Sequence record: OZ195776.1
Strand: one strand, 5' to 3'
DNA length: 64,000 nt
Below the pieces are notes generated by a model, which worked only from the letters and a program-made list of their open reading frames with translations, had not been told where the DNA came from and did not search any database. Both the position numbers and the translations under genes were made by a program. Positions within the stretch are counted from its first letter, which is position 1. Every line of letters begins with the position of its first letter. Shown in pieces: positions 3,063-41,214 of the stretch.

Positions 3063-3066
3063 TTTT

Positions 3067-3969
3067 ATGAAAAATACAAACAAAATTCGTTATTCAGAAA
3101 TGTTCATGTCAGTCCAAGGTGAAGGCGCTTATACAGGTCGTCTTTCAGTTTGGATTCGTATGCACAAATGTAATCTACAGTGTCGTGGTTTCTCTCAACC
3201 AGATCCGTTAGATCGTAGTACTTGGAAACTTGAGTACGATGAATTTGCAAAATCTGACCAATTGATTGCTCTGCAGAAAATCGAAGATCTACCAGTGTTC
3301 AAAAGCGGTTGTGATTCGTACTACTCTTGGCATCCTGCATTCAAACGTTTCATGTTTGAAGATAGCGCAGAAGACATTGCAACACAGTTGCTTGATCTAA
3401 CACCACAAAAGTCTTTTGTGTGTCAACCAGCAAATGCTGACGTTCATCTTTGTTTCACCGGTGGTGAGGCGATGATTAACCAAGACAACATTCAAGCAAT
3501 CATCGAAGAGCTGATTGACGGTGGGGATTTCCCAACGCACATCACAATCGAAACAAATGGTACTCAGAAAATGCGTCCGCATTTCCGTAACTTCTTGCAA
3601 ATGATTCGTGAAGAACATGGCGTGAAGGTTACATTCAGCATGAGTCCTAAGCTACCAAGTGTAACTGGTGAAAGTGCGAAGAAAACAATTCGTCCAGAAG
3701 TGGTTCGTTCATACGAAGAAGCTGGTTACAACAGTTTCTTGAAGTTTGTAGTGAATCCTGACGAGCGTTCTTGGAACGACCTAGACAAAGCAGTAGCGAT
3801 GTATCGTGAAGCTGGCGTGACTGTTCCGATTTGGGTAATGCCAGTTGGTGCTACGCAGCAAGAACAAGAATCTCATGCTGGTGAATTGGCTAACCGAGCA
3901 ATTGCTCTTGGTTACAATGTTTCTGCTCGTGTTCACAATTACCTTTGGGGTAATGCAGTTGGTGTTTAA
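3067..3969 (+). CDS. queE: 7-carboxy-7-deazaguanine synthase (QueE-like radical SAM)
   Basis: YSEMFMSVQGEG, RMHKCNLQC...GCDS, FTGGE, IETNG, SPKL, RVHNYLWGN motifs. Confidence 0.88.
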   Translation: MKNTNKIRYSEMFMSVQGEGAYTGRLSVWIRMHKCNLQCRGFSQPDPLDRSTWKLEYDEFAKSDQLIALQKIEDLPVFKSGCDSYYSWHPAFKRFMFEDSAEDIATQLLDLTPQKSFVCQPANADVHLCFTGGEAMINQDNIQAIIEELIDGGDFPTHITIETNGTQKMRPHFRNFLQMIREEHGVKVTFSMSPKLPSVTGESAKKTIRPEVVRSYEEAGYNSFLKFVVNPDERSWNDLDKAVAMYREAGVTVPIWVMPVGATQQEQESHAGELANRAIALGYNVSARVHNYLWGNAVGV

Positions 3970-28698: not shown

Positions 28699-29046
28699 TT
28701 AATCGTAGTACCACCAGAAACCGATGTACTTTTTAGCTTTATCGTAGAAGTCCCAGTTATTTTCAGGATCTTTCCAGAATCGAGCTTGTTGCTGTTGCCA
28801 ATGTGAACGTCTCGCTTTACGAGTGTACCACTTGACTGCAGCGGATTCTTTGTAGTTGTGGTCTGTTTCTTCAACCAAGCACCAAGAGTCATACTCATCT
28901 TCTGTGTTAATCCAATTAGCGTAACGCTCTGGATCCTCATCGTAACGATTGCGAAGCCCGTAATCCATACGGTTGATGTATTCGTCTAATGCTCCGTGAC
29001 GACGCCACGGACGGTTACCTTTTTGCTTACGATATGTTTTTGACAC
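28699..29046 (-). CDS. Hypothetical protein
   Basis: MSKTYRKQKG...; RBS gagg. Confidence 0.65.
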   Translation of the reverse strand: MSKTYRKQKGNRPWRRHGALDEYINRMDYGLRNRYDEDPERYANWINTEDEYDSWCLVEETDHNYKESAAVKWYTRKARRSHWQQQQARFWKDPENNWDFYDKAKKYIGFWWYYD

Positions 29047-29105
29047 TTTTGATTTCCTCTATTGATGACATTCAATAGAAAAAATCGTTCTCAAAATAAT
29101 TCATT

Positions 29106-29369
29106 TTAGCTACCTGTAAACAAGAATGATATCAAACTACCCAAGTCTCCAAAAGACGTGGCACCAAAAGAAAATCCTGATATCCACATTGAAACTGTGA
29201 ATAAAAGTGAAACAAAATGAACACCGAGTGCTCCAAGTTCCATCATTCTTACCGTGTTGCTACTGTTGTATGCTAACGTCAATGCGTTGATTATCAAGAT
29301 TCCGTACCAAGGTACATGAACGCCTATCATCCAACCAATGACAACAAAAAAGATGCTTACGACCACCAT
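29106..29369 (-). CDS. Small membrane protein
   Basis: Three hydrophobic segments. Confidence 0.6.
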   Translation of the reverse strand: MVVVSIFFVVIGWMIGVHVPWYGILIINALTLAYNSSNTVRMMELGALGVHFVSLLFTVSMWISGFSFGATSFGDLGSLISFLFTGS

Positions 29370-29661
29370 TATATAAATTCCTCACAATGAATTTGTGGAT
29401 GCCACTACCATCCTGCACATATTGAATCTTACATTCTGACGTGTGCACGTGCCGCGTGGTTCTCTTTCGATAATTTATACACCACTGAGACTCATAAGAG
29501 GTGTTTGACTGCATACCCAATTCCATCAGTCGCTACTGGCACCAAAACTTCCTTCAAACCAGCTCCCCTGCAGGTTGATCAACTCTATCTCACGACAGTA
29601 TTTGACCTATACTTCTTTAACGTCAGTGCAGACCCGACGATTACACAGTTAAGTGATAATG

Positions 29662-29737
29662 TGGTGGAAGTGGTGGGACTCGAACCCACGACCGACGGCT
29701 TATCGGGCCGGCGCTCTACCAACTGAGCTACACTTCC
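29662..29737 (-). tRNA. tRNA-Ile(GAT)
   Basis: Cloverleaf folded by hand; loop CCGATAA (C33); CCA encoded. Confidence 0.88.
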
Positions 29738-29744
29738 ATTAATA

Positions 29745-29820
29745 TGGTGCACCCTACTGGAATCGAACCAGTGACGCGAAGATCTTCAATCTACCGCTCT
29801 ACCATCTGAGCTAAGGGTGC
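29745..29820 (-). tRNA. tRNA-Phe(GAA)
   Basis: Cloverleaf; loop TTGAAGA; CCA. Confidence 0.92.
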
Positions 29821-30029
29821 ATATTGTATTCGTTTATATCAAAATCGGTTAACGACTCAACGAGAATAGTTGCTTTGTAACCTACGTACAATTCATCTCC
29901 GTACCACAAGTCGGTGCATTCCTCTACAATATAAGAAGAACCAAGAACGATGTGCTTGATGTTAAAGAATTGCAAATTGCGTTCAAGAACTGTTTTAGCT
30001 CTATCTGTCAATGGTTTGATTTTGATCAT
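29811..30029 (-). CDS. Hypothetical protein between tRNAs
   Basis: 72 aa ORF, RBS aggag. Confidence 0.55.
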   Translation of the reverse strand: MIKIKPLTDRAKTVLERNLQFFNIKHIVLGSSYIVEECTDLWYGDELYVGYKATILVESLTDFDINEYNMHP

Positions 30030-30060
30030 AACATTCTCCTATTTGGAGAATATTTATAAT

Positions 30061-30136
30061 TGGAGCGAATGATGAGGTTCGAACTCACGACCTGTTGCTT
30101 GGCAAGCAACCGCTCTACCAACTGAGCTACATTCGC
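30061..30136 (-). tRNA. tRNA-Gly(GCC)
   Basis: Cloverleaf; loop TTGCCAA; CCA. Confidence 0.93.
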
Positions 30137-30597
30137 ATTTGAACTTTTCGGTTCCCGTGTATATTTTGTATGTGGCACGGACCACAACCCCTACGCCTTG
30201 GTGCGTCAATGGAGCTAGTATTCGTTATCAAGTGCTGCTTCCATGTGCTACTCCTTATAGGTTTTCCAAACCCTGATTTCGCACTCTCGGCAGTTTCTAC
30301 GTCAACTTTTCTTCCGATATCCTTTTGAAACACTCACTATCCAGTTGGATTCGCATTGCTAAGTGAGGTCCGCATCCTTAATCGATTTGTCGTACACCTG
30401 AAAATTTTAATTGCTTTGATCGAACAAATTCTTTATTGCTTTCAAATTAGTCAAATCAACTTGAAGTTGCCGTAGCATTACTTCGTTCTTTGTTGATTTA
30501 ATCTGCCTCTCCAAATCCTTTATCAGAAATCCAATAGATGACTTGGTGATATTGAAATAGTTTATATTGAAACTCGCATCTGTTAAACCTTTTTGTT

Positions 30598-30674
30598 TGG
30601 TGGATAGTGCTGGATTTGAACCAGCGACCAACGGATTATGATTCCGACGAACTACCAGACTGTTCTAACTATCC
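30598..30674 (-). tRNA. tRNA-Met(CAT), probably elongator
   Basis: Cloverleaf; loop ATCATAA; CCA. Confidence 0.85.
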
Positions 30675-30676
30675 AA

Positions 30677-30752
30677 TGGTGGAGAATATCGGAATCGAAC
30701 CGATGACCTCCTCCTTGCAAGGGAGGCGCTCTACCAACTGAGCTAAGACCCC
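30677..30752 (-). tRNA. tRNA-Ala(TGC)
   Basis: G3-U70 wobble; loop TTGCAA; CCA. Confidence 0.92.
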
Positions 30753-30846
30753 ATTTATTAAATTCAAGATTGTCTATTGCAGGTGTCCGGACTTACTACT
30801 GCATAAAGCTGCTGCCTTCGTTACCTGGTTCAACAATCTTGGAAAC

Positions 30847-30924
30847 TGGCAGGAGATGTGGGACTCGAACCCAACAACCTTCGGATTTGGAATCCGCTGC
30901 TCTACCAATTAGAGCTAATCTCCT
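30847..30924 (-). tRNA. tRNA-Trp(CCA)
   Basis: Cloverleaf; loop TTCCAAA; CCA. Confidence 0.92.
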
Positions 30925-30978
30925 ATTGATGATTTTATGTTTTTAACGTGGAGATAATCAACAACTCTCACAATCAAT

Positions 30979-31054
30979 TGGGGTGACCTGCGGGGTTCGA
31001 ACCCGCGACCGCCGGAATCACAATCCAGAGCTCTACCAACTGAGCTAAGGCCAC
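30979..31054 (-). tRNA. tRNA-His(GTG)
   Basis: Loop TTGTGAT; C73 discriminator. Confidence 0.92.
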
Positions 31055-31299
31055 ATCTAAAAACACTCAACGAATGCGCTTAGATGTGATTGCCTCACAT
31101 CGAATAGTTTCTCGGACTATTCCAAGACTCTGTTACAAGTCACCGCCCTATTCTATCTGTTGTTATACTCGTGAAGGGTACCGAGTGGTCTTTTGCAAAA
31201 CTATCAAGAGTTTAGCTTCGTGCAAGGCTCTTGGACCTTCTACCGATTAGCGATCGGTATTTCCAGCAATAGAACTAATCGCTCTACTCGTAAAGTTTT

Positions 31300-31410
31300 G
31301 AAGAATGATGGGAATTGAACCCACTTCGGATAACAGCATTGTAAAGAGGCTATCGATTATTTCCTACCGGCTTGTTTCAGACCTGCATTTCCTCTTTGCG
31401 AGCATTCTTT
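31300..31410 (-). ncRNA. tRNA-like RNA with non-tRNA central domain (T4 RNA C/D-like placement)
   Basis: Acceptor AAGAATG/CATTCTT and T arm GTGGG-TTCAATT-CCCAT, but no canonical D or anticodon arm. Confidence 0.5.
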
Positions 31411-31415
31411 CAAAT

Positions 31416-31506
31416 TGGCGGAGAGACAGAGACTCGAACTCTGACGACGCTATTAACATCGAACGGCTTTCAAGGCCGCGGCAGTACCAATTATGCTTAC
31501 CTCTCC
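31416..31506 (-). tRNA. tRNA-Ser(TGA)
   Basis: Long variable arm; loop CTTGAAA; CCA. Confidence 0.92.
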
Positions 31507-31512
31507 AGAATA

Positions 31513-31597
31513 TGGTGCGCAGGGTGGGACTCGAACCCACACGCCCTAAGGCCACGGAATCTAAATCCGCGTTGTCTACCAATTCCAGCACCTGCGC
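31513..31597 (-). tRNA. tRNA-Leu(TAG)
   Basis: Variable arm; loop TTTAGAT; CCA. Confidence 0.93.
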
Positions 31598-31599
31598 AT

Positions 31600-32015
31600 G
31601 TTATTTCTACACCAGACAATAGGACTTACTTCGACTTATTCCAACGTCTAACGTATTAGCTTCACAAGGTCGTCACCTATCATATTCGGATTCACCGTGG
31701 TTGCCACCTATTCGATATAACGTCATCGAAAACGACCTGGTATTCACAAGGGCATAATGCCTATTTCCAAGTAAACCAACTTCGTCGTAATCATGCTAAA
31801 GAGCAAGAATCGAGGTAGTTACCTAATCAACACTCCGTAGAGCTGTTTCCAAGTATTGAAAACGCATCAAAGAGGCGTGGCCTATCATTCTTAGTTAGGT
31901 TTTATTGTTTGCTGGACACTGTCTTCTGTGCAGAACTTTTAATGTGGTTGTTTTTACGATTTCAAGAGAGCCACACTTCCTTGAGTAACCGTCCTAATCA
32001 AGTTAGGAAGGATAA
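31600..32015 (-). ncRNA. About 415-nt structured non-coding RNA (GOLLD/ROOL-like setting, family unassigned)
   Basis: No ORF; multiple nested stems (cttcct/aggaag, cctaa/ttagg, tgtgg/ccaca); between two tRNAs. Confidence 0.5.
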
Positions 32016-32017
32016 TA

Positions 32018-32094
32018 TGGCGGATCCTCAGGGATTTGAACCCCGAACCTTGCGCTTAACAGGCGCCCGCTCTAACCATTGGAGCTAAGGATCC
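32018..32094 (-). tRNA. tRNA-Asn(GTT)
   Basis: Loop CTGTTAA; CCA. Confidence 0.93.
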
Positions 32095-32100
32095 GTAATA

Positions 32101-32177
32101 TGGCGCACCGAGTAGGACTCGAACCTACCTCAATCCTCGTTCGTAGCGAGGTGCCAATCCAGATTGACTACCGGTGC
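32101..32177 (-). tRNA. tRNA-Arg(ACG)
   Basis: Loop CTACGAA; CCA. Confidence 0.9.
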
Positions 32178-32184
32178 AAAAATT

Positions 32185-32261
32185 TGGCGGGTGTGACGGG
32201 ATTTGAACCCGCTACCTACGACGTGACAGGCCGTTATGCAAACCAACTACACCTCACACCC
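32185..32261 (-). tRNA. tRNA-Asp(GTC)
   Basis: Loop CTGTCAC; CCA. Confidence 0.92.
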
Positions 32262-32262
32262 T

Positions 32263-32478
32263 TTAAGAAACTACATGTACAATACCTAGGATTGGAAGAA
32301 CTATAAACCAACAAAGCAAAATTAAGAAGAACAATCCTGTACCAATGATACCAGGTAATTGCTTTAGACGATATCCCCAAAGTCCATACTTCTTGATCTG
32401 TTTCTGACGTTCTAACTCTGCTCGACGAGCGATATTCTCGGAGCTAAAGTAGTTCAGTATATCTCTTGTATCAAACAT
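32263..32478 (-). CDS. Small membrane protein
   Basis: C-terminal hydrophobic helix; lies between tRNAs. Confidence 0.55.
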   Translation of the reverse strand: MFDTRDILNYFSSENIARRAELERQKQIKKYGLWGYRLKQLPGIIGTGLFFLILLCWFIVLPILGIVHVVS

Positions 32479-32493
32479 ATAATTCTCATAAAC

Positions 32494-32571
32494 TGGTCGG
32501 AACTGTAGGATTCGAACCTACGACCCCTTGCTCCCAAAGCAAGCGCTGCTACCAAACTGAGCTAAGTTCCG
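32494..32571 (-). tRNA. tRNA-Pro(TGG)
   Basis: Loop TTTGGGA; C1-G72; CCA. Confidence 0.93.
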
Positions 32572-32646
32572 AAAATAACTGGATACGTTTGTCTTTTTTT
32601 TCAAATAAAAAATTAGATTTAATGTTTGCTGAATGTATCCATAAAC

Positions 32647-32722
32647 TGGCTGGCGTAGGAGGACTCGAACCTCCGACCATCGGTATCAAAAACCGATGCG
32701 CTACCAACTGCGCTATACGCCA
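32647..32722 (-). tRNA. tRNA-Gln(TTG)
   Basis: Loop TTTTGAT; U1-A72; CCA. Confidence 0.92.
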
Positions 32723-32729
32723 ATAAAAC

Positions 32730-32806
32730 TGGTGGGTGTAGAAGGACTCGAACCTTCGACCACTCGATTAAAAGTCGAGTGCTCTAACCAACTGAGCTAC
32801 ACACCC
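32730..32806 (-). tRNA. tRNA-Lys(TTT)
   Basis: Loop CTTTTAA; CCA. Confidence 0.94.
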
Positions 32807-32878
32807 AAATCTTGTAACTGAGATAAGCATCTCATGTTTCCATTTGAAAGTAAACCAGTTATTTGATTTACTTTGAAA

Positions 32879-32955
32879 TGGAAGCGGGAGGTGGATTTGA
32901 ACCACCGACCTTTGGGTTATGAGCCCAATAAGCTACCAGACTGCTCCATCCCGCT
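32879..32955 (-). tRNA. tRNA-fMet(CAT), initiator-like
   Basis: Three consecutive G-C pairs (GGG/CCC) in the anticodon stem; loop CTCATAA. Confidence 0.88.
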
Positions 32956-32961
32956 ACAATT

Positions 32962-33045
32962 TGGTGGGAACACATACCTCCGTGGGCTTATCAACAATAC
33001 TTCACTGACTCGTAAAGTTGATTACCTTCTCCGAAGAGAACTCCC
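32962..33045 (-). pseudogene. Degenerate tRNA-like element, possibly tRNA-Val(TAC)
   Basis: GGGA.../...TCCC-A-CCA ends and a TT-TAC-GA loop, but no TTCGA T-loop. Confidence 0.4.
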
Positions 33046-33051
33046 ATAATT

Positions 33052-33128
33052 TGGTTCTCGAGACGGGAATCGAACCCGCTAATCCCACCTTGAAAGGGTG
33101 GTGACTCAACCAGATGGTCTGCCCGAGA
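33052..33128 (-). tRNA. tRNA-Glu(TTC)
   Basis: Loop CTTTCAA; CCA. Confidence 0.9.
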
Positions 33129-33134
33129 ATTGTT

Positions 33135-33220
33135 TGGTGGGCCATCCTGGACTCGAACCAGGAACTCCGTGAGGAGGACGGATTTACAATCCGCTGCAAT
33201 CGCCATTCTGCCAACGACCC
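33135..33220 (-). tRNA. tRNA-Tyr(GTA)
   Basis: Variable arm; loop TTGTAAA; CCA. Confidence 0.92.
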
Positions 33221-33245
33221 AATGTATTTTTAACTAATGTTATCC

Positions 33246-33320
33246 TGGTGCTCTGTGACGGATTCGAACCGCCGTCACCTCATTACAAGTGAGGTGCTAA
33301 ACCAACTCAGCTAACAGAGC
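33246..33320 (-). tRNA. tRNA-Thr(TGT)
   Basis: Loop CTTGTAA; CCA. Confidence 0.92.
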
Positions 33321-33372
33321 AACGTATTTGTAGTTATTATCCAGCATTCCAGCTGGTTGTAAACTTGAAAGC

Positions 33373-33402
33373 AAAAAAAAAGCCGCTTTAATAAGCGGCT
33401 TC
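33373..33402 (-). terminator. Rho-independent terminator inside the tRNA cluster
   Basis: Minus strand agccgctt-atta-aagcggct followed by a T9 run. Confidence 0.8.
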
Positions 33403-33431
33403 TATAAATCTTTGGAATATAGAAGACGCAG

Positions 33432-33488
33432 TTAGCTCGCAGGATTTGTTTCGTAAATGTAAAATTTTTGAAGTGAATGTGCGAACAT
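33432..33488 (-). CDS. 18-aa mini ORF (possible leader peptide)
   Basis: MFAHSLQKFYIYETNPAS with RBS aaggaa, just upstream of the terminator. Confidence 0.35.
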   Translation of the reverse strand: MFAHSLQKFYIYETNPAS

Positions 33489-33610
33489 AATTGATTCCTT
33501 TGGGAAAAATAAACTTTTTTTCTTTCTCTTACTTTATATATAACAGCTTACTCAAGGATTCGGCTGTTTTAAACAAAAAATTTGAATTTTTTTCAAATTA
33601 ATTTAGAATG

Positions 33611-33702
33611 TGGCGGAAGGAGAGGGACTCGAACCCTCAGACCGGCTATTAACCAGTCGATTCCTTAGCAGGGAACTCCGATACCAATTATGGGATCCTT
33701 CC
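33611..33702 (-). tRNA. tRNA-Ser(GCT)
   Basis: Long variable arm; loop CTGCTAA; CCA. Confidence 0.92.
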
Positions 33703-33712
33703 GTTGTATATC

Positions 33713-33797
33713 TGGTACGGGTAGCGGGAGTCGAACCCGCACCTCCTAAGAGAGTGGATTTTAAGTCCACAGCATATGCCAATTTCGCCATACCCGT
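33713..33797 (-). tRNA. tRNA-Leu(TAA)
   Basis: Loop CTTAAAA; variable arm; CCA. Confidence 0.92.
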
Positions 33798-33804
33798 ATA
33801 AATT

Positions 33805-33891
33805 TGGTGCCAGTGGCCGGACTCGAACCGGCACGGTATTTCTACCACAGGATTTTGAATCCTGCGCGCCTACCAATTACGCCACACTGGC
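33805..33891 (-). tRNA. tRNA-Leu(CAA)
   Basis: Loop TTCAAAA; variable arm; CCA. Confidence 0.92.
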
Positions 33892-33892
33892 T

Positions 33893-33970
33893 TGGAGCTG
33901 CGTGAGGGATTCGAACCCCCGAAGCTTGGATTTGCAATCCAGTACATTAGACCAACTCTGCCAACACAGC
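33893..33970 (-). tRNA. tRNA-Cys(GCA)
   Basis: Loop TTGCAAA; U73; CCA. Confidence 0.9.
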
Positions 33971-34057
33971 ATTTTTCAAGTTCACACTTTTGATTAGTAC
34001 GGTAGTGACTCTCCGTAATGTGGTGACCCGCCGTGGACTCGAACCACGCCCTATCGA

Positions 34058-34534
34058 TTATTCTGAACGCTCTGTGCGTCTGCGTCTATACGTTGATGTT
34101 TGTGAATGACAATTTGGACACAACCAGGATAGGTTTTCCTTCCGATTATCGTTGCTAATTCCATTAACATGTTCCAGCTCCAATGTAAGAGGTTTCCCAT
34201 TCCAAGTATCCGGAATTCCACACTCATCACAGTGGTTTCGATAGAACCCTAATCGAATTGATATTTGTCGGGCGCTGCTACGAGGTGCAGTGCAATTCTC
34301 TACAAAGAACGATTCTTCGGTGTGTGAAAATTTATTACGCTTAAACGTCTTTTTAACATCAAAGTGTTCAGTAGACACGTCGTACTTATCACACAGCACT
34401 TTCAATCGATTTATATTGTATGTACAGACCGTTATACCAACACCACGGCACACATCACTCCAACAAAACGAATCACTTGCTACGGTGATTAGCTGTTCTA
34501 ACGTATAGTGCTTAAAATCTTTATTGCTTTTCAT
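34058..34534 (-). CDS. HNH homing endonuclease
   Basis: CDEC...LELEHVNGISNDNRKENLSWLCPNCH; stop codon overlaps the tRNA 3' exon. Confidence 0.92.
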   Translation of the reverse strand: MKSNKDFKHYTLEQLITVASDSFCWSDVCRGVGITVCTYNINRLKVLCDKYDVSTEHFDVKKTFKRNKFSHTEESFFVENCTAPRSSARQISIRLGFYRNHCDECGIPDTWNGKPLTLELEHVNGISNDNRKENLSWLCPNCHSQTSTYRRRRTERSE

Positions 34535-34540
34535 TTTCTA

Positions 34541-34578
34541 CTCCTACTGCTGATGTGTTATTTATACAGCAGTAGGAG
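34541..34578 (-). promoter_or_regulatory. Late promoter TATAAATA inside an RBS-sequestering hairpin
   Basis: 12-bp inverted repeat ctcctactgctg/cagcagtaggag; loop holds TATAAATA (34566-34559); 3' arm holds AGGAG 6 nt before the ATG. Confidence 0.85.
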
Positions 34579-34627
34579 ATAATGAGTCGATTGCTCTCAA
34601 CCAGGTGAGCTATCGGGCCACATAAAC

Positions 34628-34704
34628 TGGAGCAAGTGACGGGACTCGAACCCGCGACCACCGACTTGGAAGGACGGAACTCTACCAACTGAGTTTACAC
34701 TTGC
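34628..34704 (-). tRNA. tRNA-Gly(TCC)
   Basis: Loop CTTCCAA; CCA. Confidence 0.9.
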
Positions 34705-34710
34705 AAAACT

Positions 34711-34815
34711 GGATGTACAAAATAGCTCACCATTACCTCAACCCAGAGTAACGTTAGTCTTTTACGACTTGGCTCCTGATATGTAATTTTAGGTTATTGT
34801 TTGCGGTAGACATCC
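34711..34815 (-). ncRNA. Permuted copy of the tRNA mini-intron element flanking about 70 nt of non-tRNA sequence
   Basis: Minus strand GGATG-TCTACCGCAA-AC-AAT ... TATTTTGTA-CATCC. Confidence 0.6.
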
Positions 34816-34843
34816 AAGGTCGAACCTTGACGAATCAAGATCT

Positions 34844-35173
34844 TTAAAACTGTTCACCTTTCGGCTCTTCGGTATTTAGAAGAGTAACCAAATCGTTTAG
34901 CGCATTATACTTGTTTATTTCAAGTTTTGTCGCTGGACGAAGGATTTCAGTGCTTTCCCAAGAATGAGATGTGTAGTGTTCAACATCATGAACCCAATCC
35001 CAATTGTGTAGATATGCACTATCCGGAAGTTTAATGGAATGTTTGAAGTTGGTTTTCAACTTACGTAAAAGAGTATCTGTGCTAACTGAGCCAGAGTAAA
35101 CCGCTTTTGCCAATTGTTCATCGGTAATTCGCAATTTTCTTGTAACCAGTTCGCTACCTTCAATCATGTTCAT
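34844..35173 (-). CDS. Hypothetical protein (paralog of the 35170 gene)
   Basis: Shared TDEQL..A...GS and LR.AT..EI..Y.A.N.L motifs. Confidence 0.7.
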   Translation of the reverse strand: MNMIEGSELVTRKLRITDEQLAKAVYSGSVSTDTLLRKLKTNFKHSIKLPDSAYLHNWDWVHDVEHYTSHSWESTEILRPATKLEINKYNALNDLVTLLNTEEPKGEQF

Positions 35174-35481
35174 TTCTTCATCCCGTATTCGTGACGTAGA
35201 ACATTGATTGCATCATAGATCGCAATCTCACCCATTGTTGCTTTGCGAAGAAACTTCTTCTCGATCCAGCGACCGGTACCATCCATATCTTGGTGGTAAT
35301 GCCAATTGCCGTGTTCTAAGAATGCTTCTTTACGAAGCTCACCTTGCTTGCGCAGGTTCAATCCAAGTTTGTCAATCAGAACCTCAGATGGTATAGAACC
35401 GTCTGAGAACGCTTCTAAGAGCTGTTCGTCTGTAACTTGAATCTCACAAGGAACAAGACGAGTACCTTTAATAGTATTCAT
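35170..35481 (-). CDS. Hypothetical protein (paralog of the 34844 gene)
   Basis: Same shared motifs; RBS gagg. Confidence 0.7.
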   Translation of the reverse strand: MNTIKGTRLVPCEIQVTDEQLLEAFSDGSIPSEVLIDKLGLNLRKQGELRKEAFLEHGNWHYHQDMDGTGRWIEKKFLRKATMGEIAIYDAINVLRHEYGMKK

Positions 35482-35500
35482 TATATCCTCTTTAAATGAG

Positions 35501-35576
35501 TGGCACGCCTGGAGGGATTCGAACCCACGACCCGAAACTTAGAAGGTTCCTGCTCTTCCAACTGAGCTACAAGCGC
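35501..35576 (-). tRNA. tRNA-Arg(TCT)
   Basis: Loop CTTCTAA; CCA. Confidence 0.93.
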
Positions 35577-35577
35577 A

Positions 35578-36051
35578 TTATTTCAACGTAAATTTCAAAT
35601 TGCGATAATTGTACTTAGAGCCGTTATTACGACAAGTGTTAGTCCAGAAGTCACTCCAATCAATTTTGACGGGACATTTATCTGATCCAACGCGAGTACA
35701 GAACACATCCAAGTGCGGATATTTCAATTGCAGGTTAGCTGCCGTTTGGCGAACTGCCAGTGCATGCTCAGTACGTCTTTTAGCAAGTTCTCTACGAGAG
35801 TACGTGTTTTGCCAAAAATGACTACGCCAAATATTAACACGCTTCTCATCCCAACCCATGCTAAACGAATGTTCAACATAACCAGATAATTTACCAGTTT
35901 TAGGGTCACGAGCGAATATTGCGTAACAACGATGTCGAGTGAAATCGGTTCGTTCATATTTGTCGCAGTTAATAACGTTACCTTTCTTGGTGGTACGAGA
36001 GTGTTTAATCATCGGACACCTCGAAAGATTTAAAGCGTTTATCGAACTCAC
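35578..36051 (-). CDS. Hypothetical basic protein (start may be MIKHSR)
   Basis: Long ORF between RNA genes. Confidence 0.6.
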   Translation of the reverse strand: MSSINALNLSRCPMIKHSRTTKKGNVINCDKYERTDFTRHRCYAIFARDPKTGKLSGYVEHSFSMGWDEKRVNIWRSHFWQNTYSRRELAKRRTEHALAVRQTAANLQLKYPHLDVFCTRVGSDKCPVKIDWSDFWTNTCRNNGSKYNYRNLKFTLK

Positions 36052-36190
36052 TTAGACAAGTATCAGCCCAAGACGTTGCTACGTCTTTTTCTCTGCAATC
36101 ATTTGCATTTGCTGTTGATGTCCACGCTCGAACCCACACATCACGACGTTGTTCTTCGTGACGAGCTTCTGCTTTTGTAAATTTTGGCAT
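36005..36190 (-). CDS. Hypothetical protein
   Basis: MPKFTKAEARHEEQRRDVW..., RBS gagg. Confidence 0.6.
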   Translation of the reverse strand: MPKFTKAEARHEEQRRDVWVRAWTSTANANDCREKDVATSWADTCLSEFDKRFKSFEVSDD

Positions 36191-36206
36191 TTTAATTTCC
36201 TCTTGA

Positions 36207-36475
36207 TGCCCCACCGTGGATTCGAACCACGCAGTCCATTCATTTTCCTAATACGCAAGGGGCTTGTTAGATTTAGAACCTTAACGTCAATAGAAACTAC
36301 AATTCATCGCTTTCCTGGTGTTAATAACTAACACTGCTTTCACACCAGTAATTACTCAACTCTGTATCTCAATGAAACAAGTTCGTCGGTGAAATTGTCG
36401 TTAATTAGACGACGCATTCTCGGAACAAGTTAGTCTGAGCATGACCATGTCAACGGTCTCCAGTTAGAATGGGGC
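36207..36475 (-). ncRNA. tRNA-like RNA with a large internal domain (5' end uncertain)
   Basis: 3' CGTGG-TTCGAAT-CCACG-GTGGGGC-A pairs with GCCCCAT 270 nt upstream; a closer alternative is GCCCCTT at about 36265. Confidence 0.4.
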
Positions 36476-36497
36476 TTTGTTTAATACATAATGTAAT

Positions 36498-36616
36498 CGG
36501 CCGGTGTAGGACTCGAACCTACGACCACGAGCTTAACGGGCTATTGAGTTTAGTGTGCGGTATCGATTCTTGACAGAATCATTTCATACGTGCTCTACCA
36601 ACTGAGCTAACCGGCC
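36498..36616 (-). tRNA. tRNA-Asn(GTT) with a 46-nt insert (36543-36588) at position 28/29
   Basis: Removing the insert gives stem CG|AGC / GCTCG with loop CCGTTAA. Confidence 0.8.
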
Positions 36617-36626
36617 ATAATTTATT

Positions 36627-37034
36627 TTACTCTGATTTAACATCCAAAGTAAACAGTTTTGCATTGCTTTCTTTCATCGGTTGAACGCCGACTATTTCTT
36701 CTGCAAGTAACGATGGGACAACTTGCTTCGGAATTTTGACGGTAACGCCACTTTCCTTTGCTTGCTCGCGAAGTTCTTTTGAACGTTCACGTAACATTGC
36801 AAGATGTTCTTCACGTTTTGTTACTATGTCATCAAGGTGCTCGTCGATAGTACCGATTTCGTACTTCTCACCGTAAGCAAAGGCAGTATGCCAGTGAATC
36901 TTTTTAAATTCAGCAATCTGCTTGATGTCTTTGATGACGCGTACTTCGTCGTAAACCCAACCACAGTTGATACATTCAATTGCGATTTGATCTCCGTTTT
37001 CATCGAAGAATAAAGCGTTACTTGGTAAACTCAT
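36627..37034 (-). CDS. Hypothetical protein
   Basis: 135 aa ORF. Confidence 0.65.
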   Translation of the reverse strand: MSLPSNALFFDENGDQIAIECINCGWVYDEVRVIKDIKQIAEFKKIHWHTAFAYGEKYEIGTIDEHLDDIVTKREEHLAMLRERSKELREQAKESGVTVKIPKQVVPSLLAEEIVGVQPMKESNAKLFTLDVKSE

Positions 37035-37060
37035 AATATAATCTCACGAAATAAAACAAT

Positions 37061-37190
37061 TGGTAGAGGGTGCAGGATTCGAACCTGCGCCACGGAATTT
37101 AAGAGTTTCAATGCAATTTTGGTTGCCGCAACTATTCTTTCCAGAATAATGTTTGTGCTACGTGTGCTTGCCGTTTTACACCAACCCTCT
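37061..37190 (-). tRNA. tRNA-Lys(CTT)-like with a 51-nt insert (37110-37160) at position 28/29
   Basis: Removing the insert gives CG|GAA / TTCCG around A-CTCTTAA-A; CCA encoded. Confidence 0.7.
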
Positions 37191-37289
37191 ACGAATTGTT
37201 CTAGTTGATAGATTCTGAGTTCATCTTTCACACTCAAGGTTCTATCGGACCTGCGGCTAAGTGACTAAGCTTCGCCGTTAAAATAAACA

Positions 37290-37431
37290 GGATGTACAAA
37301 TCTTCTGGTGCGTTTTCCAATTCGCTACCTCCCCGTCGATACATTATTGGTGGGGAGGGTTGGGATTCGAACCCAACTCATCACAAAAGTGAACCAGTTC
37401 TACTCGATTAATATTACGCTGTAGACATCCT
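37290..37431 (-). tRNA. Circularly permuted class II tRNA (Leu-like) flanked by the split mini-intron
   Basis: Minus-strand order: intron 3' half, 3' exon (variable arm, T arm, CCA at 37348-37350), 13-nt linker, 5' exon GGGGAGGTAGCGAATTGGAAAACGCACC, intron 5' half. Confidence 0.7.
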
Positions 37432-37436
37432 TAAAT

Positions 37437-37515
37437 TGGCCAGTAGTAAGGGACTCGAACCCAAGCACGGACTCCACGAGGGCGACTGCTTTACCTAACA
37501 TAAGCTAAACTACTT
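37437..37515 (-). pseudogene. Degenerate tRNA (anticodon stem unpaired; possibly Arg TCG)
   Basis: Acceptor, D and T arms and CCA present; anticodon arm does not pair. Confidence 0.55.
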
Positions 37516-37522
37516 TCAAATT

Positions 37523-37641
37523 TGGCGCGTGTGACAGGACTCGAACCTGTGACCTCCGGCGGGATTAATGTAATTGCTGTAACGATTCATTACTGAATCC
37601 ATTTATTAGGCCGGCATTCTAACCAACTGAATTACACACGC
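37523..37641 (-). tRNA. tRNA-Asp-like with a 42-45 nt insert in the anticodon loop (about 37564-37608)
   Basis: Asp-type D arm (ATTC/GAAT), stem CCGGC/GCCGG; same insert consensus; possible mature loop CT-ATC-CC. Confidence 0.7.
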
Positions 37642-37659
37642 GATGTTAAAAACAATTTG

Positions 37660-37780
37660 AGCAGCGTACAGGATTCGAACCTGTGTTACCTCCTGGAAAT
37701 GGAATTAGCGTTAGTTGCTGAAAGCATCTTTACCAAGATACATTGCTTTTAGGTGTCCTAGGCCACTAGACGAACGCTGC
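37660..37780 (-). tRNA. tRNA-Glu(TTC) with a 48-nt insert (37704-37751) at position 28/29
   Basis: Removing the insert gives CC|TCC / GGAGG with loop ATTTCCA; Glu-type D arm. Confidence 0.8.
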
Positions 37781-37807
37781 TCAAATTGTTTTTATTAAGT
37801 CTTATTG

Positions 37808-37931
37808 CCGGCGGGGCTGGATTCGAACCAGCGACCTCGTGCTCCCTATGCAATTAATAATTGGTTGCGGTACCCAATCTTTTCAGATTGGTTTATTAAT
37901 ACGCGCGCTAACCTGACTGCGCTACCCGCCG
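37808..37931 (-). tRNA. tRNA-Pro(AGG) with a 49-nt insert (37853-37901) at position 28/29
   Basis: Removing the insert gives CG|TGC / GCACG with loop ATAGGGA; Pro-type body. Confidence 0.8.
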
Positions 37932-38010
37932 GCAATAAGACCTAATTGTGTTCATATCTTCCCAAAGAGACAGCAACGATATGACTGGGCTGCTTAATCA
38001 ACTTGCGGTT

Positions 38011-38039
38011 ACTATATAATCAAATGATTCAGAAGTAAA
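38011..38039 (-). promoter_or_regulatory. T4-early-type sigma70 promoter (tRNA cluster)
   Basis: Minus strand (G)TTTACT-17 nt-TATAGT. Confidence 0.7.
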
Positions 38040-38120
38040 CCGTTTTTTACATCTTCCTAAAAGAGGCGGTAACGATGTAACAGGACCGCTTTTGCAACCG
38101 TAGTTGCTTCAACAGGGCTT

Positions 38121-38149
38121 ACTATCTGATAGTTAATTTCAAAAGTAAA
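38121..38149 (-). promoter_or_regulatory. Second tandem early-type promoter
   Basis: Minus strand (G)TTTACT-17 nt-GATAGT. Confidence 0.6.
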
Positions 38150-38159
38150 CCGCTTTTTT

Positions 38160-38420
38160 CTACATCCGAGATGGATCAAGAATGATGCCAGCTTCGGATA
38201 CTCCACAACGTTGAGCTTCCTGCATATTTTGCAATTGGGCAACAGCGTGTTGAAGTTCTGTTAGAAGTTTTTCGTACATACTCTGATTGTCTTTTAGTAG
38301 CGCAATCTGATCCGACTGCATGCCAACAATGTAAGTCAACAGAATGACGTTTTCCGGATCGGTAAGTGATTCCGGATCTTCGTGGTACTTAGCAAGTACC
38401 AATTGAGTTTCATTATCCAT
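38160..38420 (-). CDS. Hypothetical coiled-coil protein
   Basis: Start re-assigned to MDNETQL (38420). Confidence 0.6.
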   Translation of the reverse strand: MDNETQLVLAKYHEDPESLTDPENVILLTYIVGMQSDQIALLKDNQSMYEKLLTELQHAVAQLQNMQEAQRCGVSEAGIILDPSRM

Positions 38421-38466
38421 AGTAAATCTCATTTGACAACAATTAATTTGTGATTTAATTATACGC

Positions 38467-38498
38467 AAAGAAAAAGCGGGATAAACCCGCTTCTTTTT
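38467..38498 (-). terminator. Rho-independent terminator
   Basis: Minus strand aagcggg-tttat-cccgctttttcttt. Confidence 0.75.
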
Positions 38499-38787
38499 AG
38501 TGATCTTCCGAACCGTATTCCCAATCGTCATACAATTCATCAGCACCCTTTTCGTTTCTTCCTACCCAGATATCTTCCGGTTCCAGAACATTCACATCAG
38601 AGCCATTTACAACGCCCCAGAACACGATATACTCGCCGTTACGTTTGATTGCTTTGAATACATAACTGTTCTTCGGAACTGCCTTAGAATCGAATCTACG
38701 GCGTTCTACGACCGTTTCGATAGCATGAGCAAGATTAACGAATCTCCAGTTCATAGTTGCTTCTGAATAGAAGTCCATAAAACCCAT
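38497..38787 (-). CDS. Hypothetical protein
   Basis: 96 aa ORF, RBS aggag. Confidence 0.65.
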   Translation of the reverse strand: MGFMDFYSEATMNWRFVNLAHAIETVVERRRFDSKAVPKNSYVFKAIKRNGEYIVFWGVVNGSDVNVLEPEDIWVGRNEKGADELYDDWEYGSEDH

Positions 38788-38789
38788 CG

Positions 38790-39218
38790 TTATCTCCTTG
38801 TAAGCAAGAAATTACCGTTGCTGAATGAATACGCATATCCAATATCGCCAGCAAATCGTCTAGTTAAACGCTCATAGAGTTTCTTACGTGACGGTTCGTT
38901 ATCTGCCGCCTCGAAGTACAAATACATTGGTTGGTGATCGTGTAGCACCTCACGTACACCAGCTAACACTGTTCCCAATACAGTCAACTCACTGCCCGTA
39001 CCAGTAATACTCATATCTTGACCACGATCTCCAATTAACGCGAAGCTAATCGTCATCATGTCTTTCTGATATTCATACGAGGTTGTTAGTACGTACGTTT
39101 CTCCACCCACTTCAAACTCACCGTGTGATTGGTCGTGGGTATAGTTGTTGCTGTGATTCCAACGAATTGGTACAGATCTCTTGAGCGCCTCAACCATGTA
39201 TGTTTGAAGCGTCTTCAT
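38790..39218 (-). CDS. Hypothetical protein, paralog family 1 of 3, capsid-targeting-like N-terminus
   Basis: MKTLQTYMVEA; shared F.VG..Y...V...V...P..F.A...SRKKLY.RL..RFA...GY domain. Confidence 0.75.
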   Translation of the reverse strand: MKTLQTYMVEALKRSVPIRWNHSNNYTHDQSHGEFEVGGETYVLTTSYEYQKDMMTISFALIGDRGQDMSITGTGSELTVLGTVLAGVREVLHDHQPMYLYFEAADNEPSRKKLYERLTRRFAGDIGYAYSFSNGNFLLTRR

Positions 39219-39219
39219 A

Positions 39220-39921
39220 TTACCATTCCTCGAATGTAGCGTAAGCGTCATCGATATCGTCAGTTACGTACGAATCATCTTGATCAAGAATAATGTGACG
39301 TTTGCTTGTACCACGAACCACACCTGAGATAACAACAACATCGAAGCCGTCTTGCGACATGCCAAGAATTACCATTTCTTTACCAGGTTTCAACCAACGG
39401 AACTCACGAACTTCGAATGGGAACATCAAATCGTTTGAGTTATCGATTGCCAATTGCACTTCTTCTTCTGTCCATTCTGCATCTTTGCGTTGTGCACGAA
39501 CAAGAGTGTATTTGTTGCGATCGATTGTAAATGTGTAACCAGCGTCTTCTGCAAAGCGCTTAACAAGACGGTCGTACAATTTCTTACGGCTATCTCGTTT
39601 GTCGTCATGTTCGTAAGCAGTGAAGAAAATCTTCGTCGGGCTCTTGCGATCAATGTACTCTTTCACAGCTTTTAAAACTGAGGTGATAACTTTTAGCGTT
39701 TCGCTTGGTGAACCAGTTACGTTATTCGCAGAGACATTCATTCTGCCGCGTTCATTAACAGAACCGTAAGCTACTTCGGTGTATCCACCAAAACCAGCAA
39801 ATTCAATCACATACTGCGTTGAACCAACACGGAAGTTCGCGTCGTTGTCGTTTTTCCATTGAATTGGTGCGGCTTTCGCTAAGTCAAGCGCTTCCACCAT
39901 AAATTGTTTAAAGTCGTTCAT
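39220..39921 (-). CDS. Hypothetical protein, paralog family 2 of 3
   Basis: MNDFKQFMVEA; same domain plus a C-terminal extension. Confidence 0.75.
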   Translation of the reverse strand: MNDFKQFMVEALDLAKAAPIQWKNDNDANFRVGSTQYVIEFAGFGGYTEVAYGSVNERGRMNVSANNVTGSPSETLKVITSVLKAVKEYIDRKSPTKIFFTAYEHDDKRDSRKKLYDRLVKRFAEDAGYTFTIDRNKYTLVRAQRKDAEWTEEEVQLAIDNSNDLMFPFEVREFRWLKPGKEMVILGMSQDGFDVVVISGVVRGTSKRHIILDQDDSYVTDDIDDAYATFEEW

Positions 39922-39925
39922 TTCA

Positions 39926-40705
39926 TTACCTATCGTATTCGATGCGATGCTTATCAAGCACCTTGTAAGTTTCTGGATTTTTGAAAGATGTGCGCATATG
40001 TTTGACGTAACCGTTGGAGTAACCGTTAGCAGCCATCATCTCTCCAATCATTTTATCCAACGTGTCGACGTAATCGCCAAGAGGACCGATATGAGATAGA
40101 TCAACCACACCAGTAGTTGGTTCGTCTTCCATTGGATGAATGTTTACCACAACACCACCTGCGCCATTCGAGAACATACCAACACGTTTTTGGTCATTCT
40201 GATAGTTGATATCGTACAACACGCCTTTTGGAGCGTCTTTAACCAAATCATATTGCATTTTGTTCTTGAACGTGGCTGTTGATAACGAGTAACCGTATTG
40301 TTTACCCATTTTCTTAAACAACATCGAATACAGACGTTCGCGCTTCTTACGAAACTCTTCGTTTGAATCAGGATATGCCCAAGTTTGAATGCGAGTTGGT
40401 GAACACCAATCCATTGCTTGTTTTGCTGCTTCAATAACTGTCGCGAAAACTTGCAAAGCGTTATCGGTGTCTGTTTGATCGTTTGTCCAATCTCGCTTAG
40501 ATGCATCGAACGCCATGAAATGAATTTCCATGAGGTCGCTGGTCTTTTCCTCTGTCACGCCGCGATGAATAACGATCGCTTTGTACATCACCTTACCAAC
40601 TTGAAATATCCCCTCAAGTGGTCGATCGGAACGAACAGCATTGCTTTTCCAAGTAATCCGAGCTGGTTTATCAAACGCTTCAGTTAAGAAGGTTCTGAAT
40701 TCCAT
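39926..40705 (-). CDS. Hypothetical protein, paralog family 3 of 3
   Basis: MEFRTFLTEA; same domain plus a different extension. Confidence 0.75.
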   Translation of the reverse strand: MEFRTFLTEAFDKPARITWKSNAVRSDRPLEGIFQVGKVMYKAIVIHRGVTEEKTSDLMEIHFMAFDASKRDWTNDQTDTDNALQVFATVIEAAKQAMDWCSPTRIQTWAYPDSNEEFRKKRERLYSMLFKKMGKQYGYSLSTATFKNKMQYDLVKDAPKGVLYDINYQNDQKRVGMFSNGAGGVVVNIHPMEDEPTTGVVDLSHIGPLGDYVDTLDKMIGEMMAANGYSNGYVKHMRTSFKNPETYKVLDKHRIEYDR

Positions 40706-40758: not shown

Positions 40759-41214
40759 TTAGGCGCTCTTCTCAACCCAGTCTAAATCCAGTGGTTCGCT
40801 ATACTCGTCAATTAAATTGATGGGTTGCGAAATGTCCAGTGGTTTGACTGCATCGTCATATGACAATGTTATGTGTGCGTTGTACTCAGGAAAATCGTGA
40901 GTACCGCCTGCATCGATTAAATCATCGTGTCGATTTTTCAACCCTTCCGATTTCAATTTAACGATGACTACTGACTTGCCTTCTTGATCTTTCCAACTAT
41001 CAACTCGATAGGCTTCCGCGTCATACGAGTTACCGGTAGATGGAACTTCAATCCCATTACGACTGTATAACACAGTCGCGTGAAACTTACTTGATTCAAG
41101 AGGATTGTTCAGTTTGAGCGTTTTCTGCAGCTCTTGTAACCATTCAGAGCTCGCAGAGTCTACTTTGACACCAACATAAGTGCCTTGGTTTTCAAGAAAC
41201 TGCTGAAACTTCAT
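40759..41214 (-). CDS. 57B: Anti-CBASS nuclease Acb1 (gp57B, 2H phosphoesterase)
   Basis: FHATVLYSR and HDFPEYNAHITLSY (two HxT motifs), EYSEPLDLDW C-terminus as in T4 57B. Confidence 0.9.
   Translation of the reverse strand: MKFQQFLENQGTYVGVKVDSASSEWLQELQKTLKLNNPLESSKFHATVLYSRNGIEVPSTGNSYDAEAYRVDSWKDQEGKSVVIVKLKSEGLKNRHDDLIDAGGTHDFPEYNAHITLSYDDAVKPLDISQPINLIDEYSEPLDLDWVEKSA

Follow-up and report, generated by a model that had tools for sequence, protein, structure and literature searches.

The DNA analysed here, a stretch of 64,000 nt from sequence record OZ195776.1 (record positions 186001-250000, called the window in the following), belongs to Vibrio phage D479, a KVP40-like, T4-related giant phage with a genome of 257,764 bp. 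On the minus strand of the window lies a cluster of 26 tRNA genes, as called by ARAGORN. The cluster surrounds a tRNA(CAU) gene of 599 nt (34619..34021, minus strand) that is interrupted in its anticodon loop by an open reading frame (ORF) encoding an HNH endonuclease. The record labels this ORF 'HNH endonuclease' and leaves both tRNA halves unannotated.

The 5' half of the tRNA (38 nt) ends in ...GACTCAT, the 3' half (39 nt) starts with AATCGAT and ends with CCA at position 34021, and 522 nt lie between the two. When the halves were joined by script, ARAGORN recognized the resulting 77 nt as a canonical cloverleaf tRNA(cat) with a single mismatch, A7xG66, which is also present in the intact homologue of locus L017 (described below). 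With introns permitted, the program called the entire 599-nt stretch as one tRNA with a 522-nt intron. An earlier note, made from the sequence of the window alone, had claimed that the halves rejoin into a CAU tRNA and that the insert is essentially a hairpin plus an ORF. Both descriptions were borne out, ORF and hairpin taking up 477 and 38 of the 522 nt, respectively. The stop codon TAA (34060..34058) indeed overlaps the exon, as had also been stated, its final two As being A37 and A38 of the tRNA. The distance from the 5' junction to the ATG is 47 nt (49 nt in register (c), see below), made up of 3 nt, then the hairpin (12 bp, loop of 14 nt) and finally 6 nt. Because the dinucleotide AT is repeated at both junctions, allowing a 2-nt slide, splits at tRNA positions 34|35, 35|36 and 36|37 are equivalent in product.

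Two other CAU tRNAs are encoded in the window (30598-30674 and 32879-32955), whose features suggest an elongator Met and an initiator tRNA. The KVP40 orthologue of the interrupted tRNA is annotated as tRNA-Ile-2. The GGCCC acceptor of the interrupted tRNA, with its pairs C4-G69 and C5-G68, presumably resembles that of E. coli ileX. It is plausible that the interrupted gene is the only Ile2-type tRNA of the window. The features of the locus are collected in Table 1.

Table 1. Features of the interrupted tRNA(CAU) gene and of the tRNA-like genes with short inserts (mini-introns). Positions refer to the window, except in the last row, where they refer to locus L002.
Feature	Position	Strand	Basis or remark
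5' exon of tRNA(CAU), position 1 to C34	34584..34619	-	CTC loop start invariant across family
AT after C34, exon or intron	34583-34582	-	junction repeat
Intervening sequence in register (c), 522 nt, start AU, end GA	34062..34583	-	34060..34581 in register (b)
Hairpin, 12 bp, sequestering the ribosome-binding site (RBS)	34541..34578; arms 34578..34567 and 34552..34541	-	fold
TATAAATA, T4-type late-promoter consensus in hairpin loop	34559..34566	-	motif match
Shine-Dalgarno (SD) sequence TAGGAG	34546..34541	-	6 nt ahead of ATG
HNH homing-endonuclease ORF, 158 aa	34058..34534	-	stop TAA overlaps U36/A37/A38
3' exon, A35 to CCA end, register (c)	34021..34061	-	joined cloverleaf
Five tRNA-like genes with inserts of 42-55 nt	36497-36617, 37061-37190, 37523-37641, 37659-37780, 37807-37931	-	
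Mini-intron tRNA-like genes in L002	693-808, 2359-2482, 2492-2605, 2723-2846, 3111-3233		

The HNH gene and its expression signals

The product of the ORF matches the Pfam HNH family with 23.4 bits (cut-off 21.4) and PHROG 10822 'HNH endonuclease' at 3.4e-36. Across 45 homologues the residues C102, C105, C139, C142, H122, N134 and H143 are invariant, and the D479 protein thus contains the His/Asn/His residues of the beta-beta-alpha-metal motif together with the zinc-binding Cys pairs that define HNH enzymes. No solved structure was found among its sequence relatives.

The 126-nt stretch that holds the hairpin upstream of the ORF folds with -32.5 kcal/mol (z = -3.2). An equivalent hairpin stands upstream of the HNH gene in 13 of 14 loci of the family described below. 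An SD-like tetranucleotide was detected in 10 family loci, where all or nearly all of it is base-paired within the 3' arm of the hairpin, and the sequence (N)ATAAATA recurs in or at the hairpin loop across the HNH family. Across the window the late-promoter motif is not enriched (3 seen, 2.5 expected). Proteins of D479 are annotated as late sigma factor and as late-promoter regulator. Hairpins that hide the RBS and contain a late promoter have been described for I-TevI, I-TevII, I-TevIII, segB and Aeh1 mobE; read-through transcripts of such genes fold and mask the RBS, while late transcripts begin within the hairpin and get translated (PMC2988022). Like T4 SegB, the D479 nuclease gene lies in a phage tRNA cluster, and it shares with segB, I-TevI and mobE the placing of RBS and late promoter in a hairpin (PMC2988022). 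With a late promoter inside an RBS-sequestering hairpin, the insert is shown by its sequence to be a T4-type HNH homing-endonuclease cassette, presumably mobile, that has its own expression signals and no ribozyme. The late promoter TATAAATA in the loop, the SD sequence in the 3' arm, the T4 design and the recurrence within the family mark the hairpin as a device of expression control; as a splicing structure it was ruled out.

In its position the D479 gene departs from the free-standing endonuclease genes of T4. Those lie between genes, whereas the D479 gene lies inside an anticodon loop, at a position conserved to the single nucleotide, and its stop codon falls within the exon. In T5, too, the HNH endonucleases of the tRNA region are free-standing.

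The family of interrupted tRNA(CAU) genes

In all eight related phages examined (KVP40, phi-Grn1, nt-1, D482, V07, VS1, VH7D and V09) the orthologous tRNA is uninterrupted and has the loop CTCATAA. The earlier note had proposed to look for such alleles in relatives, and they were found in each of these phages; hence, the insertion in D479 is the derived state. In IMG/VR neither an exact uninterrupted D479-type allele nor, with D479 peptide patterns, a close HNH relative was found. A metagenome scan for HNH relatives returned only proteins of at most 41% identity. Among the best places listed for a collection of 50,697 cultured phage records, no HNH relative above 38% identity was found besides D479. 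Many metagenomic HNH relatives have 45-60% identity. Of 160 loci encoding HNH relatives (29-61% identity in the best segment), 132 have tRNA genes within 400-700 nt.

Thirteen distinct HNH proteins, that of D479 among them, were inspected for gene arrangement. The order tRNA 5' half, hairpin, HNH gene and tRNA 3' half, with inserts of 522-546 nt, was seen in D479, L010, L019, L020, L022, L184, L185, L186, L187 and L188, the nine contigs other than D479 having inserts of 524-546 nt. The same 5' layout was present in L013 (2397-3195), where the 5' half and the hairpin are followed by a longer HNH gene (226 aa), a 3' exon clipped after the anticodon stem and then the next tRNA gene. The remaining two genes are free-standing: in L017 the ORF runs into the 5' end of an intact tRNA(CAU) much like the joined exons of D479, and in L016 no such tRNA adjoins. 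A further free-standing gene, L024 from IMG/VR (HNH identity 46%), lies directly upstream of an intact tRNA(CAU). Within the interrupted-tRNA family the HNH proteins share 47-65% pairwise identity, with one pair at 75% (L022/L187). The core claim of the earlier note, that a CAU tRNA is interrupted in its anticodon loop by an HNH gene without a ribozyme, holds up. At least ten unrelated phage contigs show the arrangement again, one of them with a 3' exon that is truncated. By these sequence comparisons the element belongs to a conserved family of HNH cassettes, not described before, that occupy one tRNA(CAU) site. A literature search found no description of an HNH gene arranged in a tRNA without a ribozyme. 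As the free-standing relatives L017 and L024 adjoin intact tRNA(CAU) genes, the enzyme probably targets this gene. That it acts as a homing enzyme, which would cut the uninterrupted allele and lead to the cassette being copied in, is supported indirectly by its presence and absence among relatives, by its occurrence at the same site in many contigs and by free-standing copies beside the intact target.

Bacterial tRNAs can carry group I (IC3) introns in their anticodon loops, as in Azoarcus tRNA-Ile(CAU), Agrobacterium tRNA-Arg(CCU) and cyanobacterial tRNA-Leu(UAA). The D479 insert resembles such introns in its host gene, a tRNA(CAU), and in its insertion at the anticodon. More remote relatives within the HNH clade (about 30-40% identity) are carried by group I tRNA introns of 700-1000 nt in L054, L035 and L097, and shorter group I tRNA introns without an HNH ORF occur in L033 and L078. 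Unlike these, the 522-nt insert of D479 has no ribozyme core. Rfam searches returned no intron or ribozyme family, RF00028 included, at E<=1 over positions 29000-39000, at E<=10 over 33950-34700 or at E<=1 in the family loci L019, L020 and L022; at the D479 locus only tRNAs came up. In the same run, tRNA introns of other phages matched Intron_gpI with 30-65 bits, so that a core would have been found if present. The earlier note had named a group I structure overlooked inside the ORF as one finding that would overturn its reading. RNAalifold, applied to a codon alignment of ten family ORFs, gave only -7.4 kcal/mol and no multi-helix fold. The boundary rule of group I introns, a U before the intron and a G at its end, points the same way: where CAU is restored, the last base of the intron is A (split at 34|35) or U (36|37), and the one register with both U and G, 33|34, would give the anticodon AAU. 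A group I or other known ribozyme is hence excluded by the Rfam scans with their positive controls and by the fold analysis of the ORFs, in agreement with the claim that the insert has neither room for nor trace of a group I core. A conserved guide-like helix formed by the leader and the ORF's 3' end was rejected as well. In some members the Arg-rich 3' end of the ORF can pair with the 5' junction or with the leader, but each does so differently (8 bp in L185; CUCUUUCG with CGAAGAG in L186 and L188).

The sequences at the two junctions differ in their conservation. On the 5' side, C-T-C is found in all members and is followed by AT (3 members), TT (7) or CT (1). The 3' side is invariant, with G-A-A-T-A-A ahead of the stem. 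All ORFs that reach the junction, namely 9 of the 10 tabulated and that of L013, have GAA as their last sense codon, and in L019 the ORF stops 5 nt earlier. Since GAAT survives in L019 beyond the ORF, and since the residues before GAA vary elsewhere, the 3' junction is conserved at the nucleotide level. Three registers were compared. A split at 33|34 (register (a), intron end G) yields the anticodon AAU in all members, a split at 36|37 (register (b)) yields CAU, CUU or CCU depending on the member, and a split at 34|35 (register (c), intron end ...GA) yields CAU in all members; for the D479 tRNA, registers (b) and (c) give an identical product. Among 118 uninterrupted IMG/VR tRNAs matching the anticodon stem of L010/L185, 32 carry CAT, 9 CTT and none AAT. 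The CAT class has the GGGCCT... body of the interrupted genes and a median identity of 0.86, compared with 0.78 for CTT. As the CAT class outnumbers CTT and is the closest to the interrupted genes, and as AAT is absent, register (c) is preferred. Judged from these alignments, the split probably lies at 34|35; a split at 36|37 would be rather unlikely, and one at 33|34 highly improbable. The 36|37 split of the earlier note does restore CAU in D479, but the family comparison favours 34|35. The boundaries it reported, TA...AAT, are literally present in the 36|37 register. That the neighbouring mini-introns share them says little, and the mini-introns are built differently.

The two halves have kept their fit. 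In the ten intact cases 205 of 209 cells of the cloverleaf are standard pairs. In the anticodon stem, which has the insert between its strands, all 50 cells form pairs; each position is occupied by 2-3 kinds of pair, and at least seven different stem sequences occur. In the closest HNH pair, L022 and L187, an unusual D stem is common to both, and the anticodon stems are wholly different yet fully complementary. At the level of sequence, such kept pairing is what selection for a working tRNA would predict.

Protein splicing or loss of the tRNA

Among the proteins of D479 are Rnl1, whose C-terminal domain (T4_Rnl1_C) is specific for tRNA, and Pnkp, which has both a kinase and a phosphatase domain; Rnl2 and a CCA-adding enzyme are encoded as well. 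In T4, Pnkp and Rnl1 re-seal tRNAs that have been cut in the anticodon loop (PMC7824862). We regard the chances as about even that the cassette is an intron that would be removed by protein cuts, its flanking halves being sealed by the phage Pnkp and Rnl1. The lack of a ribozyme, the derived state of the insertion, the existence of a real family, the matching halves, the invariant 3' junction and the presence of sealing enzymes argue for this reading. So do the five further tRNA-like genes of D479 that hold inserts of 42-55 nt, a size below that of any group I core. In such a pathway the pre-tRNA would fold via its acceptor, D, T and anticodon stems, leaving the 522-nt insert as a giant anticodon loop, and the hairpin in read-through transcripts would bar ribosomes from the HNH ORF. 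A phage- or host-encoded endonuclease would cut after C34 and after the conserved ...GA, whereupon Pnkp would heal the ends and Rnl1 would seal the breaks in the anticodon loop. The ligated product would be a 77-nt tRNA reading ...GACUCAUAAUCGAU... with the loop CUCAUAA. The HNH enzyme, expressed late from the promoter in the hairpin loop, would cleave uninterrupted tRNA(CAU) alleles of co-infecting relatives, and repair of the cut allele would copy the cassette in (homing). A wider proposal, which we make more tentatively, is that these are the first mobile, endonuclease-carrying, ribozyme-less tRNA introns in bacterial viruses and are protein-spliced (endonuclease cuts at C34|N35 and GA|A35, joining by Pnkp/Rnl1), that splicing would be native to phage tRNA repair, and that the short inserts of the five neighbouring genes may use the same pathway.

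Several observations weigh against protein splicing. No candidate for the cutting endonuclease was found, and the D479 annotation (record 1-150000 and 214900-225720) holds no EndA-like product name; to our knowledge, no EndA-type endonuclease is known in bacteria or in D479. Pnkp and Rnl1 are common in T4-like phages irrespective of such inserts. RNAduplex and manual checks revealed no bulge-helix-bulge (BHB) or other junction pairing common to the family; in D479 alone, UUAU and AUAA could form a BHB-like central helix of 4 bp, which the sequences of the CTT-group members do not allow. The stop codon of the ORF could account for part of the junction conservation, and in L013 nothing of the 3' exon is left past the anticodon stem. 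In addition, recurrent or recent invasion of intact genes by the cassette could also produce the kept pairing. Since HNH and exon distances correlate only weakly (Mantel test, r = 0.28, p about 0.08), selection for a working tRNA and repeated invasion cannot be separated here.

Some of these observations suit the explanation that no splicing occurs at all. A selfish HNH gene would then have inactivated a dispensable phage tRNA and would persist by super-Mendelian inheritance in co-infections, the invasions being young. The absence of a ribozyme, the decayed 3' exon of L013 and the weak co-divergence of HNH genes and exons, as expected of repeated new invasions, all fit. So do the free-standing HNH relatives beside intact tRNA(CAU) genes (L017, L024) and the state of position 35, which with the split placed at 36|37 is T or C instead of A in eight of the 11 members. 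We know of no bacterial or phage enzyme that excises such a tRNA insert, which likewise counts for inactivation. AUA is rare in the long ORFs of the window (0.52% of codons), and the host presumably has its own tRNA-Ile2. However, 10 of 11 members retain a fully pairable cloverleaf at 35-53% HNH divergence, with compensatory changes that straddle the insert, although exons of 36-41 nt should co-convert with the cassette and then decay together. The AU before AA at the 3' junction is invariant and its 5' copy variable, as if the 3' copy supplied positions 35-36, and the tRNA is intact in all eight relatives examined and hence not obviously dispensable. Inactivation appears less likely than protein splicing, yet it is the main rival. 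The earlier note had offered protein-mediated splicing or inactivation as the choice, and this remains the right dichotomy: phages may splice some of their tRNAs by means of proteins, or a selfish gene may repeatedly kill one tRNA.

Two further explanations are far less probable. One is a cryptic or novel self-splicing RNA that overlaps the ORF, or is built of the 5' leader and the 3' end, and is missed by the models. ORFs that overlap ribozyme cores are known from organellar group I introns, and distant HNH relatives live in group I tRNA introns. Third-position entropy drops to about 0.9-1.05 near the 3' end of the ORF, compared with about 1.4 elsewhere, and lineage-specific pairings between leader and ORF 3' end, such as the 8-bp helix of L185, exist in several members. 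These long-range pairings vary by member, however, and the leader between 5' junction and hairpin ranges from 4 to 31 nt and is unconserved past NUUCG. Together with the blank Rfam search at E<=10, the lack of a conserved multi-helix fold in the ten aligned ORFs and intron ends in A or U where group I requires G, this makes such an RNA very unlikely. Equally doubtful, or slightly more so, is that the halves act unjoined or join in trans, the 3' half coming from the late transcript started in the hairpin loop, or that the interrupted gene serves some purpose other than decoding, such as distracting anticodon nucleases as a decoy. Transcription from the late promoter in the loop would indeed yield an mRNA ending in the tRNA 3' half. 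Neighbouring tRNA-like genes with odd anticodon loops of 7-9 nt, variable between close relatives, hint at non-standard roles, and phage tRNAs are known to counter tRNA-targeting defences (PMC10264068). Yet a tRNA nicked in its anticodon would be unable to decode, complementary guide sequences of the Nanoarchaeum type are not visible, and the invariant junction is explained no better than by splicing in cis.

If protein splicing takes place, the D479 insert would resemble archaeal BHB introns, including rRNA introns with LAGLIDADG homing endonucleases, and eukaryotic tRNA introns in having no ribozyme, in depending on an endonuclease cut and a ligase seal, in its capacity to carry a homing-endonuclease gene and in its place in or near the anticodon loop. 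It would differ in the lack of a family-wide BHB, in its position, 34|35 (or 36|37) and not 37|38, where eukaryal introns sit and form their A-I pair, and in its ligase, which would be the ATP-dependent Rnl1 acting with Pnkp. With Pnkp and a T4_Rnl1_C-containing Rnl1, D479 has the repair enzymes of the PrrC/Pnkp/Rnl1 restriction-repair system of T4. That pathway mends damage, whereas removal of an insert needs a second precise cut, and we know of nothing that links T4 tRNA repair to insert removal. The favoured 5' site, 34|35, presumably coincides with the cuts of several anticodon nucleases (colicin E5, zymocin). The homologue of gp57B (40759-41214, minus strand), which carries the label 'RNA ligase' in related records and in PHROGs, was considered as a splicing ligase and rejected, as it is Acb1, an anti-CBASS 2H phosphodiesterase (Pfam 3.8e-40).

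In the textbook view, the introns of bacteria and of their viruses are all self-splicing, and the removal of tRNA introns by proteins is confined to archaea and eukaryotes. What makes the D479 locus significant is a family of ribozyme-less inserts whose tRNA halves are kept in working shape, found in a cultured phage that encodes a full heal-and-seal kit. The same nuclease clade occurs in three states: free-standing beside a tRNA, inside a tRNA without a ribozyme, and within true group I tRNA introns. Were the insert spliced, it would point to a protein-dependent tRNA splicing pathway in the bacterial world, give Pnkp and Rnl1 a role beyond countering anticodon nucleases, and represent a living intermediate in the stepwise association of homing-endonuclease genes with introns. 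Were it not spliced, the locus would be a clear case of a homing endonuclease spreading while destroying its target gene.

Short inserts and other features of the tRNA cluster

The five tRNA-like genes with short inserts (Table 1) are kept in all KVP40-like phages examined, and the annotation of KVP40 lists them as tRNA-Pseudo-3/4/5. Counterparts in KVP40-like phages have been annotated as pseudo-tRNAs (PMC3468402). A mini-intron consists of a hairpin of 6-7 bp with a GNNA tetraloop in all but one case, a T-N-C-N-G-C-A motif and then 6-16 nt. Its stem shows compensatory changes between KVP40 and D482, and most mini-introns are located at 28|29 in the anticodon stem. Without their inserts the genes have anticodon loops of 7-9 nt, whose sequence varies among close relatives and often lacks U33. 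Membership of the HNH insert in this class was considered and found no support. The insert lacks both the YNCNGCA motif and a short hairpin like those of the mini-introns, and its C-terminal CGCA repeats are Arg codons. As it shows none of the mini-intron features, the two are different elements, which are alike in that the mini-introns are too small for a ribozyme and the HNH insert has none. In Lak megaphages, tRNAs with 'enigmatic introns' of no known class have been described (Devoto et al., 10.1101/356790). Those inserts are short, with no endonuclease ORF reported, and are nearer to the D479 mini-introns than to the HNH insert.

Manual reading of the flanks of three mini-intron genes (37931-37807, 37780-37659 and 37190-37061, minus strand) showed acceptor stems stretched to 9 bp. 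In L184 a 116-nt tRNA-like gene (2981-3096), whose anticodon arm contains an insert of some 40 nt, is found at a distance of 1.2 kb from the tRNA interrupted by the HNH gene, so that short and long inserts co-occur outside the KVP40 group. The region around 37230-37450 (minus strand) may hold a circularly permuted tRNA-like gene, in which a T arm and an acceptor 3' strand ending ...CCCTCCCCACCA are followed, after a linker of 13 nt, by a D arm and the acceptor 5' strand that matches (GGGGAGGTAGCG...). A weak Rfam match to 'tmRNA_permuted' falls there (18.6 bits), and ARAGORN accepts rearranged joins with many different anticodons. Next to it, at 37450-37520 (minus strand), lies a tRNA-like stretch with a T arm ending ...ACTACTGGCCA, which no tool called and which overlaps a weak YrlA-like match.

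The surroundings of the interrupted genes hold further items. In L185, the region 978-2427 just upstream of the interrupted tRNA encodes endonuclease VII and an RNA ligase (PF09414, PHA02142 OB domain), the ligase gene ending 465 nt from the tRNA. In L184, a contig unrelated to D479, a DUF6934 gene (1718-2176) lies directly beside the interrupted tRNA. In the window of D479, three tandem paralogous ORFs (38790-40705, minus strand; PHROG 6387) include one with a weak match to DUF6934. A small ORF within the tRNA cluster (36627-37034, minus strand) is labelled 'major head protein' in the record, and its C-terminus matches the N-terminal 40 residues of the Gp23 capsid family (Pfam 1.6e-5).

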